Below are positions 10,470-23,680 of a stretch of DNA of 64,000 nucleotides, in pieces. The position numbers and the translations under genes are program-made. Location: the NCBI GenBank assembly GCA_009103225.1, contig RHPI01002533.1, positions 709,368-773,367 of the forward strand. The letters are read 5' to 3'. The notes under the pieces were generated by a model, which searched no databases, was not told the DNA's origin, and saw only the letters and a list, made by a program, of their open reading frames with translations. Positions within the stretch are counted from its first letter, which is position 1; each line of letters opens with the position of its first letter. Source of the DNA: Chlorokybus atmophyticus. Taxonomy: Eukaryota; Plantae; Mesostigma and Chlorokybus algae.

Positions 10470-12235
10470 GGCGCCAGACCCAAGTCCCACAACCTCGTTC
10501 ATAACATGTTGAATATGCACAATAATCTTCGGCTGCGATTACCATATTCAGAACCTCTGAGCATGCCATGCAGTGCATGGTGAGTGCATGAGTTATTGTG
10601 TCTCATGTCAAAGTCCACCAATGCATTCAAGATGTCAAAATTGAGATATTGTGACCACACTGTATGATTATCGGTGTTGAATGTTTCCACAATATGCGTA
10701 TGTATGTGTGAATTGTACAATGGTGTTTACATGTATAAGTGTGTAAGAGCCGAATGTCTCATTTATGCCCCATCCCATACATGTTACAACACGTGTGTGT
10801 ACACGTGCAGAGATCATCTGGAATACATGGCATGCTACACTCGCCTTTATCTGGCTTCGGAATCATGCATATCGCTCGTGGCACGAACACGTATATGCAT
10901 GTATACATGCATACACACGACCAGTGGTAAGCAAGCAGCATTACAACTTATGTCATAATAAAAGTAATCTTTATTCCAATATGATGTTTATAAATATACG
11001 CACGGTAGCACGATCCACTCACACTGTACGATGCCGAATGTGACATGGTGTCAAATGTCAAGTGTCACATGTAATTCAGGTTTTATGCACATCACGTGCC
11101 AGTCTACAACATATTAATTGCTTTGCGATAAAATCGTAATAAATAGATAGACGGGATCTAAAATCACGGCGCACAACCGCAAAAAAGGGAGCGCGTATAA
11201 AGAAGAGCACGATATTAAAAACTAGAGCCGCTCTTACTTTTGCTATTAAGTTGCTTGCAGCTTCGGTCAAGTTTTTCTTCTTACTAGATTTTTAATGACC
11301 GTATGCGGCGTGTATATTAAAAAGATGGCTCGAGCTAGTGCCGACGAGTGGCTCGAGCCATGTGTCGCATAAGCAGCGGTAACACTGAAAAACTTTTAAT
11401 GGGGGGTAAGTTGCAGGCATGTAAGGTTGTTTTGTGTCGCAGAGTATATGCGTAGCAAGGTGCATGCTGTGAGTAATTTGTATAGTGTATCAAGGTTGTT
11501 AATCTACACATCGTGCACCGTGTGGGCACTGTAGAGCAATTGGTGTCCATATGAGAGCAGACATAGATTGAGAATTGAGACATCTTTGTTAGAATTGTGT
11601 ACAGTGGCTGCATGGGACAAGATCTTACATCACATGACACAGCAACAAACGTGTCTTGCCCGACCACTGGCCCTCGCCTGCCTTTCTCCAAGCATTTCCC
11701 TTACCTCCCAAGCATGCATGCATGCGCGGATAATATAGGGAGGACAGGACAAGTGCCAGTTACTATCATGCTCACATGCACTCCTTGCTTATCGTGTGCA
11801 TAGAGTATGACATATCGCACCACATTGCAGATGCCAGCCGAGAGGAAATTCTGATTTCCAATCGAGGTGCTAACGGAGCTTGGTTTAGCGGATGCGCAGC
11901 TGGAGTTCTTTTATTTATATAATTACGCTTCTCCCCTGAAGCTGTAAATGTGGCTGATGACGCGCGGAATCTGCTTGGACGTTTGAATTGAGTCAGCCGA
12001 CAATGACGCTATAATTTGTGGCTGTTTGATGGATTATTGGATTGATAGCTAACTCCATCACTTTTTCGTGCAGGCCGCATGTGCAAGATGCTAGTGCGAT
12101 GGAGCCGATGCTTGCAAGAAGCATAACCGGCCAAACATGATTAATGTTTACATGTTTAATTGTTGATCTCGTTGGTGCTGTTGTCAGTTGTTACAGCGCC
12201 ACCCGCATTGCAGCATATTCTGCACGCTTCCTTTA

Positions 12236-12270
12236 CAGACAAGAGGCCCGAGGGGGTTTCACTGCGTCAG
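12236..12270 (+). repeat. Left bipartite terminal inverted repeat
   Basis: 23-bp outer block followed immediately by TCACTGCGTCAG. Confidence 0.92.
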
Positions 12271-12569
12271 TTTTGATGGTGCCGCGCTGTGTGGGTTAGT
12301 GCGTGTCGTGCGCTGTCGCGGTCAACAATGAGGTCCCTTGGGTCGCCGTTGGAAGCGTTCGTTGTCGAATGTCGGCGTCATGCAGTGGTTTCATGTGCAG
12401 TCTCGTATAGACGCAGTCGGCGGATGTTGATGCTATGTGCGGTCGATGCGCGTGGGTGAAGCGTGAAGTTTCGAAATTTGAAAACTGGGAATTGTGTCGG
12501 TTTGTGTGCGCAGTTGTTGCATTCTGGGCGGCGGTGTTGGTGTGGCGGTAGTGGCGGTGTGTGGGAGGT

Positions 12570-15500
12570 ATGGGCAGTGAGGGTGTGAGCGTGGGGGGGG
12601 AGTTTGATGACGAGCACGAGGTGAGCCTGCAGGAGCAGTGTGGTGAAGGTGATGGCAGGCGCGAGCATGCAGAACAGGCGGGGCAGGCAGAGCGGGCAGA
12701 GCTTGCGGAGCAGTCTGAGCGCCAGGGCGAGGCTTCGCATGCTCCCGGTCGTCGCGGAGCAAGGCCTCGGGCTGCTGGTGAGTCTGGTGCGACCTCTCCA
12801 GGTGCTGAGGCAGCCAAGAAGAAACGGAGGCTGCAGCAGCGGACGGCTTCCAAGAAGTACAGAGGGAATCGCAAGGACGTTATCGAGGCGCTGCGAGCTG
12901 ACCTCAACCTGTCTGATGGCTTGAACCACGCAGAGGTGTTGAAGGCCGTTGCGACGTCAGGGCGATGCTGGAGGTTGGGGTCGGACCGGCGTACGCTGTG
13001 TATGCTGCAGGTGAGTTCGTATGCATGTGGATGTATACGTGCCGTGAGAATGTGTGCTGCTTGCGGTGTGTGTGATTGAGGCGTTGACTGAGCTGATTGC
13101 AGGGAATCCATCCTGAGTGGCGTCCGCCTGGGTTTACAGGATTGCAAGAAGATATTGCCAGGCGTGCTTCGGTCCCATACATCAGCCCGCCTCTTGGCAG
13201 TCAATATGTGGTAATTTAGTGTTAGAGTGCGTTATGTTTGTGAGTCGACGTGCGGTTTGGGAGCTGGCAATTCGTGTCTGATGACGTGCTGTGTTTTGTA
13301 GAGTGGGCGAACCGACAATCAAGAGAATGTGGACCCAGCTGGAGTGGGCGGTCATGTAGCACGTTCGCCCGCTAATGGGAGTGCGCTGCACACCAGTCAA
13401 CTGCAGCGTCCATATGATAGCAATGTGCAGCCTTCCCAGCCAACATCTCAGCCTAGCCAGAGTTGTGATAACAGTGTCCTGCATGGTTCTCACCATATCG
13501 GAGGCCAGAATCATGCTCGCCCGACCCACTATGGGGGAGGTCCGCGAGCGCAGTTTGTGCGTCCGTATACATACCCCTAGTGAACTCGCAGTAGATTAAA
13601 CTGTGGCAATGTGCTGCCTTAGGTTTTGAAGATCCCCATTCTGGTGATGGCAGTGTGCCAGTGTTCAACATGAGTTTGAGTGCGGACAACTTGTCTTCAG
13701 TGCAGGTCAGCATGTGTCTGTGCATTGTGTGCGTGTGTGCGTGTGTACAAAAGAAGTATGCGACGTATGCTGCATGCATGTGTGTGTGTGTGGGNNNNNN
13801 NNNNNNNNNNNNNNNNNNNNNNNNNNNNNNNNNNNNNNNNNNNNNNNNNNNNNNNNNNNNNNNNNNNNNNNNNNNNNNNNNNNNNNNNNNNNNNNNNNNN
13901 NNNNNNNNNNNNNNNNNNNNNNNNNNNNNNNNNNNNNNNNNNNNNNNNNNNNNNNNNNNNNNNNNNNNNNNNNNNNNNNNNNNNNNNNNNNNNNNNNNNN
14001 NNNNNNNNNNNNNNNNNNNNNNNNNNNNNNNNNNNNNNNNNNNNNNNNNNNNNNNNNNNNNNNNNNNNNNNNNNNNNNNNGGGGGGGGTCACATGCAATG
14101 CATCAGTGGTGTGCAATGTGGTATGCCTATATGCTTACACTGGTAGAATGAACATCAACTTGTCACAGGATGTGGTGGCTGCGTGGGAATCAGATAGGTG
14201 TGGACTACTGCAACAACTTGAGAGTGTGTCGAGTGCATTGCTTGCTGCGGAGCTAGCTAATGAGAGCATGAAGCATGCGTTAGGCCAGCACCAGAACCAA
14301 GGCAGTGGAAGCAGTCAGTCATCACAAGTTGGCAGCGAGCCAAATTCAGTCCCGTCTCAACCCAATGAAGACTCTGGGTGTCCTAGTTGTGATCTGCCTG
14401 GGAGTATTGCAGCAGAGCAGCAGAGGCTACAGCAAGAGCAGTTAAGGCATGCCAGGGAGGTTGATGAGGCTGCGCATGAGTGTGAGCGCTGGCGAGAATA
14501 TGGAGTGCATCTGGAGCAAGAGCTGCGGTTGTTGCGCGCAAATTCTCCAAGTGTTGAGGAGCTGTGCACTGAGACAGTGTTGGCGAGGGAGAAGACCTCT
14601 GGGGAGGTTAGTGGTTTGCTGGGTCTGTTGGCAGAGCTCGAGGGCGCGCTGGAGGATGTGCTGCGGGAGCTTCATGCCTGTCAAGACCAGAAAGAGGTTA
14701 GTACACAACCATTACAACTTGATGTGGCAGTGCTTGCATTAGCTTGATGTGCAGACCTGTGTGTGCCTGGCAGCTGTTGAGGGTGGCGAAGGATGATGCC
14801 ACCAAGCTCGCCAATGACTTGGGTGCGCAGCTAAGAGAGCAAGAGCGTCGTGCGTCAGTAGCAGACCCAGAAGTGCATCAAATTGAGCAGGTCAATGGCT
14901 TAGTGCAAGCAATCAGTAGAATGGTGGGTCCTGCATCTTGATACAGCATTGTTTGACAAGGACCGCTCAACACAGAATGTGCACACCTTGCAGGCTTGTA
15001 GGAGTGTCAGCGATGAGGCCACCACGCGTGCCAACATGGTGGCTGCAAGGGTGATTGAGTTGGAGCGCTTGGATGCAATTGCGAAAGCTCAGGTGTGCCA
15101 GCTGCAGATGGAGTCCCGCACACAGAGAGACACGATTGAGGTGAGTGCATTGAGCTGTGCTGTGTGCTGGGAACGGATAAAGCAGTCTGCGTGTGCTGAA
15201 CATATGCTAGATGGCAGCAACTGACCATGGTTGTTGCAGGTTTTGCAGCGTGAGGTCATGGATGCTGTGGACGATGCGAGGGAGAATTATGCCCGTGCGC
15301 AAGAGGCTGATAATCATGAGGCACAGGCCTGTTTACACATCCAGGACCTGCAGTGCGAAGTGTCGAGGCTGCAAGACGCCCTGGATGCCCTGAAAGACTC
15401 ACTATCACCTAGCGGGATTTCTTGGCAGCAGCAACTTGGTCGAGAGGTGGAGCATATGGCCTTGCTGAAGCAAGTGGCTGGTGCTGTTGGCCATGCTGAG

Positions 15501-18500
15501 TTGCCAGCGGAGCCTGTGAGATACATCGCGCACCAGTTATGGCTCAGTAGTGTGCCTGTCAAGATGAGTGACGTTGGGACACTTTACAAGCTGACTCACC
15601 ATCAGCGTGGCAACTTAGTGCGCACTGTGAGGCGCGTGCTTGGGAACGCCCTGTTTGTGGTGACTGGCTCCAAGCGCAACGGGACTCTGCTGCTCAGGAG
15701 CTGGGTGGACCCAGCCGTGTGCATGCTGGGCGCGGTGCATCATCCTATGGAGCGGAGGGGAGAGCAGGAAGGCTTGTCTTCAAAGACGCTTGCCTACATC
15801 CTGCAGCTTGTCAAAGATGAGGCCAAGCAGAGGTCTGAAGTTAACAGCAAGACATGCGCTGATGTTAGATTTCTTAATGAGGAGAAGGAGTTGCAAGGCT
15901 GCCACCCAGATCTGGTTCGCCTATTTGAGGCGCTGACAGGGACGCCACATGTCCATGACAACATGAAGCAGTGGGAGAGGGTGAAGCACTTGAGAGCGAT
16001 GTACATGCTGAGCGGTGTGATATACATAAGGAACTCGCACGCATACTCGCGTCTTCACGTGGCGTTGGGAGAGGCTGTGGAGGCTTTCAGCGGGTCTCCT
16101 TCACTGCAGATGATACTCAATCGATTGGGGGTGTGCATTAGCAAGGCGACACTGGATCGCCACATCATGTCGCGCAACATCGAGGCGAGCAACAACCCCT
16201 GCCCTGTGCAAGCAGGAGGAGAACAGTTGGTAATTGCGACTGTGGACAATTGGGATTTCAGATGCCAAGGACAATTGAGGTACAATGGCGGCGCGGATAA
16301 AGACTTGCACTGCACCACAACCCAGGTTGTGATACCCAAGCCTGCACATGCGGGACCAATGCGTATGGAAGAGGTGCCCGCTCAGAGGTTCAGGACTCTG
16401 TCACAAGCTGGCATGTCTCCACCCACCACAGTTGAATTGCCTCCACAGCTGCCCAGGCCTCGCACTGATATGGCACCATCTGCAAGCGAGCAAATTACAA
16501 GTCAGACACTTAGTGAAGCTGACAGCTTCGCTAGCTTTCAAGTGGCGTTGCACAACACTGTGTGGAAGAGGATGGAAGTGCCTGCACTCAATCAGAACAA
16601 GCTGAAGAATGTTCTGGCGCACCTGTTAGGGGGTGGTGACGCTGCGTCTGCAAGTCAGGTGTATTACATGCCGCTCTTGCCCTTTAACCCTGACAAACCA
16701 GACCACTTGAAGCTTGCTCTGTTGAAGTTGCACGAGCATCTTCGTGTTGATCTGTCCGGCTGCAAGGTGTTAGTGGGGGGTGACCAGAAGACTTTCAGCC
16801 TCATGACGACACTCAAGCACACAGAACCAGGGTACTGGGACTGGCTCCTCCGTCTGCCAGGGGACTGGCACGCACTGTACAACTTGTTACCTGTCCTCTT
16901 CAAAATCTACTGGGATGCCGGACTGGACGAGATGTGTGTGTGTGCTGGTATCCCTAGCAGCACTGCGCGCAACATGCTAGCAGAGGGTTCCAATTGAAAG
17001 CGCATGCACGCGTACATGTTACAGTGCTGGGAGGGCATCTACAGGTACCAGCTCAAGGTATTCATGCAGGCTCACCCAGATACACTGGAGGCACTTGGCA
17101 TCTTCAGTGTGGAGGACATCGACCTCAATGACCCCAGACACTGCGCTGAGTTCTTCGCGTATGGTGCCCACAGAGCTGAGGAGGATGCCACTTGGGCTTT
17201 GTGGTGGCACTTCACCACCCGTGATGCTGCAGCCTATCTTGCGTTGTACCTTGCCCTGCGCACCAGCCAGTGGGACTTGCATGTGGCATCATACAAGGCG
17301 CTGTCTCCGCTATCCTTCGCATGGGATAGACCACATTACCAACGCCTCATGAGTCAGCACCTGGTGGACATTCAGCAAATGCCACCAGATATACTAGAGC
17401 AACTGCAGCAGGGTGCGTTCACAATCAGCATCACTGGCAAGAGCAGTAGCAATGTGGCACTGGATGAGGCGCATGAGTGCTTGATCAACAAGGATCTGAA
17501 GAGCTGTTTGACCAGACCAAATGGAGATTACCTGACACGCAGGACAGCACATGTCGCTCACCGAGCTGTGGGGCTCAAGAAGCTGTTGCACGTTCTGCGA
17601 GTCAAGGAGGACGCTGCGGTACCTGAAGACACAGTTATAGTACCCAGCGACAAGACCGCTATTGATGTGGAGGCCATGCTTCATCTGCTTGAGACATCTG
17701 GGGTGCTTAATGTCCACCGCGAAGAGCAACTCGTTCATCTCGTGAGAGGGAAGCCAGTCCATCCGCAGCTGCTGACCTGGGCAAGCACTACGCAGTTGGA
17801 CAAGACCAGTTCACGTTGTTTGTCAAAGCGGTGCATTGCAACGAGATGACTGGAGTCAACATAGGCAGGAGGTTTGGACTAAAGACTATGCAAGTGAAGA
17901 AGCAAGTGGTGCAGAAAGGGAGGGCATTGCATCGCATGCAGAAAACCAAGACACTGATCTTGAAAAAGTTGGCGAAATCTGGTGCACCGGTGGAGGCTGT
18001 GATGGCCTCTTATCAGGCTACCCCAATGGCTATCTTCACAGAAGAGGGAGACATGAGGAAGGGAGACAAGGCCAAGTTCCTCAACCTCCTGAGTACCGCA
18101 TGCCCAACAGCCCAGGTGCTCAGGCACCCATCAGGTGTGCAAGCCATTATCGCTGAAGGCATGTTCATCATCAACAAAGGCCCCAGCACAGGCGTGGTCA
18201 CAATGCGGGACTATCTTCTTCAGATACTTCGCACTTGCTTGCTCCCTCGCTTGTTCAACCCAAGCGTCCAATCCCTGCACGTGGTGTTTGACGATCCTGC
18301 ACACGCCACAGGCGTCAAAAGCAGCCTGCAGGCTTGCAGAGACAGTGGTGCTGGCCGATCAACCCGCACCTTGACTCTGGAGAGCGAGGTCCCCCGGTCC
18401 TGGAGAGATCTGCTTGCTGACCGCACTTTGAAGCGTAGCCTGTGCTGCCTCTTGACAACGCACTTACCTGAGTTGGTATCTCCTTATCTGAGGCTTGGAC

Positions 18501-19777
18501 AGTCCTTCATTATTGCAGGAGGGTCAGACTCCCCTGCCTACAAGGACAAGGCGAGAGTGGTAGCATGCACTGTCAACGGTGTCCAATCCTGTGAGAGCAG
18601 TGCATATCAGAGCAACCATGCCGAAGCCGACAGCAGAGTTTGGCTCCATGCTCTGCTGTGTGGATACCCAACCGTTCTCATCTACTCCCCCGACACAGAT
18701 GTGTCGATCATAGGGCTGTCCGCTCTGGAGCAGTGGCAGTCTCCAGAGCGCAGAGTATACATCCAGCTTGCGACCAACTCCCACTGCACTGCCAGGGCTC
18801 CCTTCATCGACTTGTCCGCCCTGTACACTCACTTGGCTCAGATTCCACAACTACGCCACATCACACCAACACTCCGTGCCAAGTTCATGCTGCTATTCTT
18901 CGCGGGCACGGGATGCGACTATACTAGCTATTTTGCAGGCATCAGCAAGACCTACTTCTGGTCAGATGTACTGGCAAGAGAGACAGAGTTCATCACACGC
19001 TGCGCTGACCTCAACGAGGTCGAGTGTACAGCCGTCCTGATGCGCCTCATCGGATGCGCCTACTTCGCTAAGCACAAAGTAGTTTTCCCAAACTACAACA
19101 GTGCTGCCAGCATCTTCTACGACACCAACGGCATCACAGCCTCGACGGGGGAACTGCCGTCACTTCGTAAATGGCTGCACACAATAGCACAAGGCATATG
19201 GGAAAAGACTGGCGACAGCAAGGAAGACATGCCATCACCTTCAGCGCTGGAGCTGCACGCGAAGAGGAGCAACTGGGTGATCGCAATGTGGCTGCAATCC
19301 TGTACTGCTCAGTTGCAGCTGCCACCCCTTTCAGAGTATGGATATGTACTCGTGGACGGGCTGTTTAAGGCCCAGATGGACACTCCGGAGACCATCGAAG
19401 CTGCCAAGCTCAGAGCGCAGCTCTTGTTGCATGGCTGCAATTGCAAGAAGAATAGATGCAACACAAGGCAGTGCAGATGCAGAAAGAATGGCAGCAGATG
19501 CGGCCCCAGCTGCGGCTGCCTCAACTGTCAGAACCTGGTAGACACCCAAGCCCCCACGCAGGTGGAGCCCACATCAACACAACCACCAGCTGAGTTCACA
19601 GACGATGATGACAGCAGTAGTTCAGAATCAGAGGAAGACCCAGAGGCAAATGAAATTAACATGCGTCCCACGCAGTTTGTGGATCCAGATCAGTCGTCAG
19701 CAGATGAGGAAGACGAACCCACATTCGACGTCCATGCATGGTTGGACCATGTGCAGGATGCAGACATAGCCTGGTAG
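12570..19777 (+). pseudogene. Academ transposase polyprotein (bHLH-like / coiled coil / DDE transposase / XPG-like nuclease / CXC finger), 8 exons, about 2,070 aa, with one in-frame TGA and one -1 frameshift
   Basis: Exons 12570-13010, 13103-13210, 13302-13539, 13623-13705, 14169-14696, 14774-14890, 14994-15140 and 15240-19777 splice in frame at GT-AG sites. Transposase motifs: ATVDNWDF, GGDQKTF, LPGDWHALY, VALDEAHECLINKDLK. Nuclease motifs: LHVVFDDP, NHAEADSRVWLH, YSPDTDV, GTGCDYTSYFAGISK. Finger: GCNCKKNRCNTRQCRCRKNGSRCGPSCGCLNC. Lesions: TGA at 16995-16997 and a frame change near 17760. Confidence 0.85.
13795..14080. other. Assembly gap inside intron 4 of the transposon gene, between (GT)n and poly-G
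   Basis: Seen directly. An extra exon hidden in the gap cannot be excluded. Confidence 0.98.
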
Positions 19778-20782: not shown

Positions 20783-21216
20783 GGCGGTGGCACAATCGCA
20801 ATCTCTCCCCACAGGCTGCGACCACGCCGCTACATCGACTACCGCTTGCACAGCCGCGCTGCCCTGGCTCCCAGCAGCACCGTTGCCACCGCTCCCCTCG
20901 GTGCGCACACCGCGGCCGCCTCCACGACCGCCCCCGCGGGCGCCCTCAGCAGCAACGCCAGCCACACCGCCGACACTGCCGCCGCTTTCAACCTACCACC
21001 TCTCGCGCCAAAACCCTCGTTCCTGCCCGTGTTGCCAGCAAACACCTGCGATGACGCCACTCAAAGCCGACACAGACTGCCATTGCTCTCACATCATCGA
21101 CTGTCATCACGTCATCAAGAGCCGACACACACAGCTGAACGGTGCGCACAATCGTTTCACGTCGCGCCGTTATGACGCCATCAGCGTCACAATCGCATCG
21201 CAGTTGATCAGAATGC

Positions 21217-21262
21217 CTGACGCAGTGAATGGCAGGCGGAACCCCCTCGGGCCTCTTGACTG
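21217..21262 (-). repeat. Right bipartite terminal inverted repeat
   Basis: Outer 23-bp block (21240-21262) and inner block CTGACGCAGTGAA (21217-21229), separated by about 10 nt that are absent at the left end. Confidence 0.92.
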
Positions 21263-23680
21263 TTTACCATTTTTTACTGCTGCTTGTAACCGCATGCCGC
21301 ACGCTCCCGTCCCGTTGAGTCCTGCTCGCTTTCTCATTATTCCGGTGTTGCAGACCCCGTTGCATTGTGTTTGATACAACGCATAAGTTATTGATAGTTG
21401 AAGAGAGTTGAGTTGCTAGGTTGTTGGAGCTTCTTTTTCCTTCCGTTCAGTTGAGGCGTAGCTCTTATAACGTGTTTCGAAAGGTTGCCAATGTTGTCAT
21501 CGATTTGCATCTGTTTACAGATAATTTGTAAGGTGGCTTGATAGGCCACCTTACGAATAATACATCCTCTACGTGCAAGCTTTACAACTCCAGCTCCTGG
21601 TGCTGCAATTATCACTATTAAGTCCCACTAAAATTCAACAACTCCGATTGTGAAATGCTCGCGTGCTGACCAACAAAGATGCTGTTAATACTTGAGGCAT
21701 CGCTTACCTCTACCACAACCACCTTCAAGTCAAACAATTGTGTGCACTCAAAGTTCACCTTACTACCATTATATGGATTTGGGTGACACTGAAAAACATC
21801 TATTGTTTTGTTAAGTTGTCGCTGCTTATGCAAACATCCGACATGCATGTAATGGCTGGTGTCACAATCGCTCGCGTTCTTCATAACTCAACACATGTGG
21901 TGGGTACATCCGCACCTCCAACTTGCCATTTCATCCGCAGTCGTGGCAAGGTCAACAGCTTAACCAATGTTTGCATGCATATGGTTGCCACTTTGAGTGG
22001 CAAACAAGATGGGCTCCCAAAGTGTTTTCATATGATCAATAATGATAATAATAGACTCATGTTGATGCCATGTTGAACGTATTTCCTCTCACCCGTAAGA
22101 GCAATGTTACAGAGTTGGCCCCCGCCTCGGATTCATACAGCTCGCGTTGAAGGCCGCGCTCCGCTAGTCCACTTGTAAGGGTGCGTAAGGTCAATTACAA
22201 GCACAATATAGCGGCAACAACGGCGGTCGCTAATGGAAAGGCTTCGATCATCCACTTTCGTGGCCTATTTAATGCTTGGTGCCAGCGGCCACATGGCTTA
22301 CACAAGATTTTTCCATAGTATGGATATCCTAATCCTGATCCATGAACGCAGTCATAATGAAGTGCAAACGCTTGCACTTTGAACATTGTCAAATGACGCC
22401 ATTTGTTAATGCTTGGAGATGATCTCCAACGAGAAATACAACACACGAAACAATCGAAATACAATGAGTCAATGTTATTAATTTTGCACCAGCATTGACA
22501 ACTATTGTACCTTTTGTGTTACCTCGTGTTGCACAATAGGTAGTCCATGCATGTATGGCTCTTATTAACATTAAATATAAACAATAATTAATACAAAAAA
22601 TAAACAGCAGCAACATAATATGTATACATTTCAGCATTGATTGCTGGTATGTGCATGTGTGTTTCCACTCACTCTGGTGATAAAAGTTTTTTTTAACGTA
22701 CGCGCAGTTGTCGTTGCAGCAGGTACTGTTATTGCAATGGCATGCAGATGGTGATCTACCATGCGCTGTGGACAACTGAATGTGGAAGACTTCAGAGAGA
22801 TTTACCCTTGAAGGCAACTGCTGCATAAGCCTATGGTGCCAAAAGCATGCATTGCAACCAGAGCAATAGTGTGGCACACCATCACGTTGCACTTGTCCAC
22901 GAAGTGAAAATGCTAAACCTACAAGCAATACACGGATATACCAATACATGGGCTCACTACTTCCAGATCTGAGGGATACCTACCGGAAGGCTACATTTTG
23001 TATTGTACATGCATGTCGTGGTATTCATCATATCATTTTTCTTCATAGATGTTAATTACCCTTGATTTAATACATCGACTCATGGTATGCTTGCCTTTAT
23101 ATTTGCACAATTATTTCAATTGCTGATACTGGTGGAGTGTGAGCTGCTCAATAGAATTACGAAGCCATGCACAGCTGATACAAGAAAGCCATCATTTTGG
23201 TTTGATGTCACTCTACTATTGCTGTGATTATAGCTATAGCAATTGCATGAACAAGCGCTGCGCGCTTGAATTTGCAGACGCCAAGAAACAGTTGACAGCA
23301 TGGGCCAGCGAACCCAAAGTTTGTGCCAATCTAACTTTCATAGTGAGAATGATCTACTGAAGGTTTGCTGTCTATTAACCGACATTAACAAATGTGCGCT
23401 TGATACGGTTAATAGGTTTTTGCAGCCATACATGCGGTTCAATAAGCTAAAATCCTTGCCTTGATGTGGCAGACACATTGCGCACTTGGAGTTTGCCATA
23501 CAGTGTGCCGCTGCAACCGTGTCACCATTGTATTTGTGCATTGCAGCTTGTGTGTTGTGTATAATAATGCAGGGGTCTATGCTCACTTAGAGGCAGCAGT
23601 TGTGTTAGCAGGCCTTCTTGGGTTGCAAGTGCGCAACTAGCCACGCTTCTTACTGCATTGACAACCACCGCGACTGGCCC

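Follow-up and report, generated by a model that had tools for sequence, protein, structure and literature searches.

An expressed orphan N-terminal module in an AcademX-like transposon of Chlorokybus atmophyticus

What kind of protein begins with the first exon of a transposon when the translation of that exon looks like two families of transcription factors at once? The question is raised by a stretch of 64,000 nucleotides from the alga Chlorokybus atmophyticus (contig RHPI01002533.1 of assembly GCA_009103225.1, positions 709,368 to 773,367 of the forward strand), referred to here as the window, which carries a transposon of about 9 kb that, judged from its sequence, looks like an element of the AcademX type. 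An initial annotation of this DNA had read part of exon 1 as a hybrid DNA-binding module, like both basic helix-loop-helix (bHLH) and basic leucine zipper (bZIP) proteins, and fused to the N-terminus of the transposase. Overall, we find instead an N-terminal module without known relatives, which is expressed, which belongs to a transposon of a known kind, and for which membership of the bHLH or the bZIP family is not supported. Our preferred explanation, held with moderate confidence, is that exon 1 encodes a lineage-specific N-terminal module consisting of a nuclear-localisation signal (NLS) and a small DNA-binding module, carried either by the transposase or by a separate upstream protein. 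In this explanation, a basic stretch (residues 83-102) would direct nuclear entry and may add non-specific DNA contacts, and a domain of about 45 residues (101-144) would be the sequence-specific DNA-binding part, replacing the Cys/His-rich N-terminus of distant relatives and recognising the element's terminal or subterminal repeats. Judged by its sequence features, DNA binding or end recognition by the module is plausible.

Exon 1, its transcript and its predicted product

The peptide singled out by the initial annotation is present in exon 1, and only its start had to be corrected: window positions 12810-12956 of the + strand translate to AAKKKRRLQQRTASKKYRGNRKDVIEALRADLNLSDGLNHAEVLKAVAT, and the start that had been given, 12808, lies two nucleotides out of frame. 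These are residues 81-129 of an exon of 147 codons (Table 1), whose ATG at 12570 opens a frame 334 nt inward from the element's left end. Expression was assessed with contigs from public sequencing runs of the same organism aligned to the window, which represent RNA because introns are skipped in them. A spliced contig of one run (X1) corresponds to 12598-13010, 13103-13210 and 13302-13506 with 0 mismatches, and both introns that it omits are of the GT..AG form on the + strand. Exons 1 and 2 are multiples of three in length and the frame is open into exon 3, so that the open frame spans both confirmed introns; it stays open for 275 codons, up to an in-frame TAG at 13578-13580. The expectation that exon 1 would be retained in transcripts was thus borne out, the exon being found in spliced + strand RNA from which the introns are removed. 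A second X1 contig, unspliced from 13484 to 13686, runs through the in-frame TAG at a k-mer depth of 7.6 (compared with 7.4 for the spliced contig), and another RNA contig, 12293-12546, also covers the stretch between the left end and the ATG at 12570. The GC content of the three codon positions of exon 1 (0.71/0.53/0.67) resembles that of the transposase open reading frames (ORFs) farther downstream.

Within the product, the basic stretch contains matches to monopartite NLS patterns of the form K-K/R-x-K/R (KKKR, KKRR and KKYR) and to the bipartite pattern (K/R)2-x10-12-basic, as RR-x10-RGNRK; on these matches, which are matches to patterns only, the stretch is most likely a classical NLS. 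Both AlphaFold2 models that we computed, one of the 147-residue exon and one of residues 78-147, render it as a low-confidence helix or as coil. The N-terminal acidic part is disordered in the AlphaFold2 model, leaving the mini-domain that follows the basic stretch as the sole part of the product that looks folded. Its predicted order is a helix (101-112), a loop of 7 residues (113-119), a second helix (120-130) and a beta-hairpin (133-136 and 141-144), with a predicted local distance difference test (pLDDT) score in the helices of 82-87 in the run on the exon and 75-82 in the run on the shorter segment, and the two runs agree. The helix-loop-helix secondary structure after a basic stretch that the initial annotation had proposed is therefore also what two AlphaFold2 runs predict.

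Several points weigh against a translated product that enters the nucleus and binds DNA. Nine upstream ATGs (12276-12446), opening frames of 5-43 codons, lie between the left terminal inverted repeat (TIR) and the ATG at 12570, and they would hinder translation from that ATG if the contig at 12293-12546 belongs to the same transcript. The opposite strand (12296-13204, -) has an open frame of 302 amino acids that spans exon 1 and the two introns; this frame is most probably an artefact of composition, and in view of it the length of an open frame counts for little by itself here. The 275-residue product is mostly of low complexity and about two thirds of it is predicted to be disordered in the AlphaFold2 model, the models are single-sequence predictions whose fold matches are all non-significant, and both nuclear import and DNA binding are read from sequence patterns alone.

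Some of these points would equally suit an account in which exons 1-3 are never translated, forming a spliced 5' leader or a non-coding RNA whose resemblance to a transcription factor arose by chance in a GC- and purine-rich open frame. Beyond the upstream ATGs, the extensive predicted disorder and the long frame on the opposite strand, such an account would accommodate the lack of a relative in any database searched, the depth of the sense RNA (about 7, versus 172 for antisense RNA over the transposase) and the seven chance occurrences in the window of a relaxed motif that is discussed below. We nevertheless consider it unlikely, because the frame remains open for its full 275 codons over two confirmed introns, exon 1 resembles the transposase ORFs in its codon-position GC, and two models concur on a compact domain whose pLDDT, at up to 87, is higher than a random frame would usually give.

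Comparison with the bHLH and bZIP families

Kinship with bHLH or bZIP proteins, the central proposal of the initial annotation, found no support, as no match was obtained in Pfam, among PDB sequences or among 1.84 billion proteins, no fold match was significant, and the defining residues are absent together with the zipper of the one family and the long helix 2 of the other. In hmmscan searches of Pfam with the 69-residue module, the 147-residue exon and a 172-residue ORF, 0 families were reported at E<=10, HLH, bZIP_1 and bZIP_2 included, with the limit that the filters of HMMER may conceal Pfam matches above about 0.1. A phmmer search of 177,635 PDB sequences at E<=10 returned no bHLH or bZIP chain and only a ribosomal S4e protein (E 1.2). 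A word-index search with exon 1 was empty, and scans of metagenome and viral contigs for the module returned no relative. The domain had also been described as captured or novel, and for a capture we found neither a donor nor a relative in the word-index, 1.84-billion-protein, metagenome and viral contig searches. Two HMMER matches among the 1.84 billion representative proteins were rejected, being tetratricopeptide repeat proteins of bacterial type with scores summed over up to seven repeats.

Comparisons of predicted shape gave a similar picture. Foldseek searches of the PDB with the two models produced nothing significant (best E>=2), and an exhaustive structural comparison with both models reached only Z<=3.4, while the best Z that this tool typically gives when there is no clear match is 7-8. 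Among the 50 chains listed for the first model, about 17 are HLH transcription factors, which makes theirs the commonest family (Z 2-3.1), and they recur with the second model; the look-alikes of the first model include ID2 (Z 3.1, root-mean-square deviation 3.3 over 40 residues), MyoD-E47 (3.1), ID1 (3.0), MYC-MAX (2.6), partners of ARNT, and MITF. Winged-helix proteins (ORC/Cdc6, ArgR, Fur), SAP and LEM domains and unrelated chains score like the HLH chains, and we regard the enrichment of HLH factors among these weak matches to predicted models as a lead and not as support. A shape search of the ESM-Atlas likewise returned nothing significant (template-modelling score, TM, <=0.30); N-terminal matches to AAA_22 in that search were rejected at TM 0.29. 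The nearest protein language-model cluster is a bZIP family with a score of 0.79, a level that a third of shuffled proteins reach.

At the level of single residues, the remarks of the initial annotation are correct as a description: the position of the bZIP Asn holds Gln, that of the bHLH Glu holds Ser, one helix ends in LR, and another carries AEVLKAV. Like the bHLH family (Pfam HLH, PF00010), the module has the order of basic stretch, helix ending LR..L, loop, and helix starting AEVLKAV, and ID2 and MyoD/E47 are found at Z of about 3; it differs from that family in having no profile match and no Y-I-x2-L core, in the Ser (Ser94) that stands for the E-box Glu, in the Gly99-Asn100 that separates the basic stretch from the helix at 101-112, and in its second helix, which is short and followed by a hairpin. 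The predicted lengths are 12 residues for helix 1 and 10-11 for helix 2, after which the beta-hairpin begins, and in helix 2 the hydrophobic core of the family is lost after eight residues. The likeness to bZIP proteins (bZIP_1, PF00170; bZIP_2, PF07716; the ATF4-type basic region) lies in Q-R-T-A-S-K-K-Y-R, which fits the spacing N-x2-A-A-x2-[CSY]-R, in the basic cluster before it and in a Leu at +18. In that register the Arg is kept (R98) and the near-invariant Asn is Gln (Q90), but a heptad leucine zipper is missing, with Leu at +18 only and Ser, Glu and Thr at +25, +32 and +39; the would-be helix is broken by Gly-Asn and by Ser-Asp-Gly, the models placing coil at 92-100 and at 113-119 and giving separate short helices in place of a long continuous one; and no bZIP profile matches. 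A relaxed signature, [NQ]..[AST][AS]..[CSYF]R, is found 7 times when the window is translated in six frames, so that the bZIP-like signature alone is weak; among these 7 only the copy in exon 1 has a preceding basic cluster, as judged with patterns chosen post hoc.

It could still be argued that the module is a very divergent relative of one of these families, in which DNA would be read by a basic helix and dimers would form through the two helices or through a coiled coil encoded downstream. The share of HLH factors among the listed structural matches, their recurrence with the second model, a bZIP family as nearest language-model cluster, and the mimicry of a bZIP basic region by Q-x2-A-S-x2-Y-R with Leu at +18 would fit this, as would TGACGC repeats near the ends of the element, which resemble a bZIP half-site, and the long coiled coils encoded downstream. 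We judge it very unlikely. All Z values of the structural comparison are 2-3.4 against a noise level of 7-8, with unrelated chains scoring the same, the cluster score of 0.79 is within reach of shuffled proteins, and no profile, PDB sequence or protein among the 1.84 billion links the module to either family; to the Gln, the Ser/Glu/Thr zipper positions and the helix breakers on the bZIP side correspond, on the bHLH side, the Ser, a basic part that is not continuous with helix 1 and a helix 2 whose predicted length would probably not allow a four-helix dimer bundle; and both an in-frame stop and an assembly gap come between the module and the coiled coil.

Table 1. Positions of the features discussed, in window coordinates
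Feature	Position	Strand	Description or basis
Left TIR	12236..12258	+	target-site duplication TTTA (12232-12235) just before; blastn of both ends 23/24 identical, including one flank base
Exon 1, 147 codons (441 nt)	12570..13010	+	acidic disordered N-terminal part, then basic stretch and small folded module; GT donor at 13011
Basic stretch, residues 83-102 (KKKRRLQQRTASKKYRGNRK)	12816..12875	+	net charge +9 over 20 residues (pattern/charge scan)
Predicted small domain, residues 101-144	12870..13001	+	two single-sequence AlphaFold2 runs
Intron 1 (GT..AG)	13011..13102	+	joint in RNA contig of run X1
Exon 2, 36 codons (108 nt), in frame	13103..13210	+	RNA contig of run X1
Intron 2 (GT..AG)	13211..13301	+	RNA contig of run X1
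Exon 3, 92 codons, rich in Ser/Pro/Gln/Gly/His	13302..13580	+	ends in the in-frame TAG 13578-13580; translation, RNA contigs
Assembly gap, 286 N	13795..14080	.	(TG)n-like low-complexity flanks; separates the 5' ORF from the coiled-coil/transposase ORFs
Coiled-coil exons and transposase ORFs	14148..19777	+	ORF list, Pfam scan
Transposase ORF with weak DUF6589 match	15231-16997	+	Pfam
Transposase-region ORF	17004-17849	+	ORF list
ORF with nuclease-like part and CXC domain	17816-19777	+	Pfam (CXC)
Right TIR	21240..21262	-	target-site duplication TTTA (21263-21266) just after

The transposase, its relatives and antisense RNA

The fusion of the module to the N-terminus of the transposase, as first proposed, was not recovered. 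The sole RNA that leads towards the transposase runs unspliced past the in-frame TAG at exon depth, the gap of 286 N comes next, and downstream of it RNA was seen only in an antisense-spliced form. As none of the RNA contigs joins exon 1 to the transposase, the simplest reading of the RNA is an upstream ORF of 275 codons, and the module may sit on a separate protein of 275 residues. Gene models across 13795-14080 are provisional because of the gap; donor and acceptor pairs that would keep the frame across it allow 224 combinations on paper, a number that is uninformative. Beyond the gap, an ATG at 14148 shares its frame with the first of the coiled-coil exons. In Pfam, the transposase core matches DUF6589 with an E of 1.3e-5, which is below Pfam's cut-off, and CXC is matched with an E of 3.3e-5, while the nuclease-like part has no XPG hit. 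A word-index search with a 588-residue ORF was empty, and exact-product look-ups for two ORFs of the window found neither on record.

A two-protein arrangement has a precedent in PIF/Harbinger elements, which encode a Myb-like ORF1 protein next to the transposase. By analogy, the 275-residue product might be a separate accessory protein that, once imported into the nucleus, would bind the subterminal repeats and bring in the transposase, an account that overlaps with the one we prefer. The shared layout would be a transposase gene preceded by a separate ORF that encodes an NLS and a small helical domain; the module differs from the PIF/Harbinger protein in having no Myb/SANT similarity. Consistent with two proteins, RNA passes the TAG as far as 13686 at exon depth although introns 1 and 2 are spliced out cleanly, the ATG at 14148 could start the second protein, and NLS-like patterns and oriented subterminal repeats are present. 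The assembly gap, however, hides the sequence between the two parts, a minor spliced form would be compatible with the contigs, the gap can be bridged in frame on paper, and the Academ elements described to date encode, to our knowledge, one long protein. We therefore consider a dedicated accessory protein distinctly unlikely.

Our preferred explanation, which allows for either protein, draws on a comparison with other transposases. Eukaryotic cut-and-paste transposases carry an NLS and a small DNA-binding domain at their N-terminus, such as the paired-like helix-turn-helix of Tc1/mariner, the THAP domain of P elements and the BED domain of hAT, and the N-terminal DNA-reading part is usually the variable part of transposases. 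Like these, the module lies at the extreme 5' end of the coding region, with an NLS-like stretch adjoining a small helical domain, in an element with intact TIRs and oriented subterminal repeats; unlike them, it has no detectable relation in sequence or fold to the named domains, and it is known here from sequence and models. Relatives of the transposase were retrieved from public assemblies at 27-32% identity (E down to 1e-72), and they keep the order of transposase core (DUF6589), nuclease-like part and CXC cluster. Two of them, in two ENA assemblies (L001:7674-12670 and L002:7550-12907), start with C-x2-3-C...C-x2-H in a THAP-like spacing, for which Pfam gave no match. Among the relatives retrieved, none has a counterpart of exon 1, of the basic module or of the coiled coil. 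Since relatives begin with Cys/His motifs and with nothing like exon 1, lineages differ in the N-terminal part, which would be swappable; in the copy in the window, the basic module stands there instead, together with an extended coiled-coil region and introns of the spliceosomal type.

A spliced antisense RNA is abundant over 14302-16200 (-), where it crosses the coiled-coil exons and the transposase ORF, and it reaches past 16200. Its introns (14678-14756, 14831-14986, 15102-15225 and 15514-15599) are canonical on the minus strand only. Antisense contigs identical to the window were found in three runs of two studies, with k-mer depths of 172, 41 and 21, the first of which is about 25 times that of the sense 5' RNA (172 versus about 7), and the longest antisense ORF over this stretch has 109 amino acids. 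No sense-strand RNA was seen over 14302-16200 among the contigs of the three runs.

The ends of the element and the meaning of the module

The element ends at 12236 and 21262 in TIRs of 23 nt that differ by one mismatch and are both intact. A second block, TTCACTGCGTCAG, is common to both ends and continues the TIR, with an insertion of 11 nt ahead of it at the right end. The description of AcademX in PMC10045372 (citing Kojima 2020) gives a target-site duplication (TSD) of 3-4 bp and a nuclease-encoding lineage; by the rule as worded there, the TTTA on either side of the element and the TIRs at both its ends agree with AcademX. Besides the 4-bp TSD and the short TIRs, the element has a putative transposase core with a weak DUF6589 match and, after it, an ORF with a nuclease-like part and a CXC cysteine cluster, an order that would suit AcademX.

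Inside the TIRs, the core TGACGC/GCGTCA, a motif picked post hoc, is found in six copies in the two 335-bp ends (at 12264, 12375, 21052, 21173, 21184 and 21218), a density of 9 per kb versus 0.5-0.6 elsewhere, or about 15-fold over the rest of the element and the window. Five of the six copies have the same orientation relative to the nearer end, and the longer forms GGCGTCAT and CTGCGTCAG recur in the subterminal stretches 12259-12569 and 20930-21239. Some protein presumably binds these oriented GCGTCA repeats. A more specific proposal would be that a separate small nuclear protein reads the TGACGC repeats as a monomer, through a single bZIP-like basic helix together with the mini-domain, and recruits the transposase. 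We consider this highly improbable; if it were true, this Academ lineage would work with two proteins and recognise its ends through a domain of a new kind, held in check by abundant antisense spliced RNA.

As the claim of a bHLH/bZIP hybrid is at present without statistical support, the module does not, as matters stand, bear on the evolution of transcription factors. Its possible meaning lies with the transposons themselves. Should the module prove to be conserved among the Academ copies of Chlorokybus and to bind their ends, it would be the first DNA-recognition part described for an Academ transposon, and it would add a further case of transposases exchanging their N-terminal DNA readers. 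For understanding how the alga controls the element, the antisense spliced RNA and the oriented subterminal repeats may be of more help.

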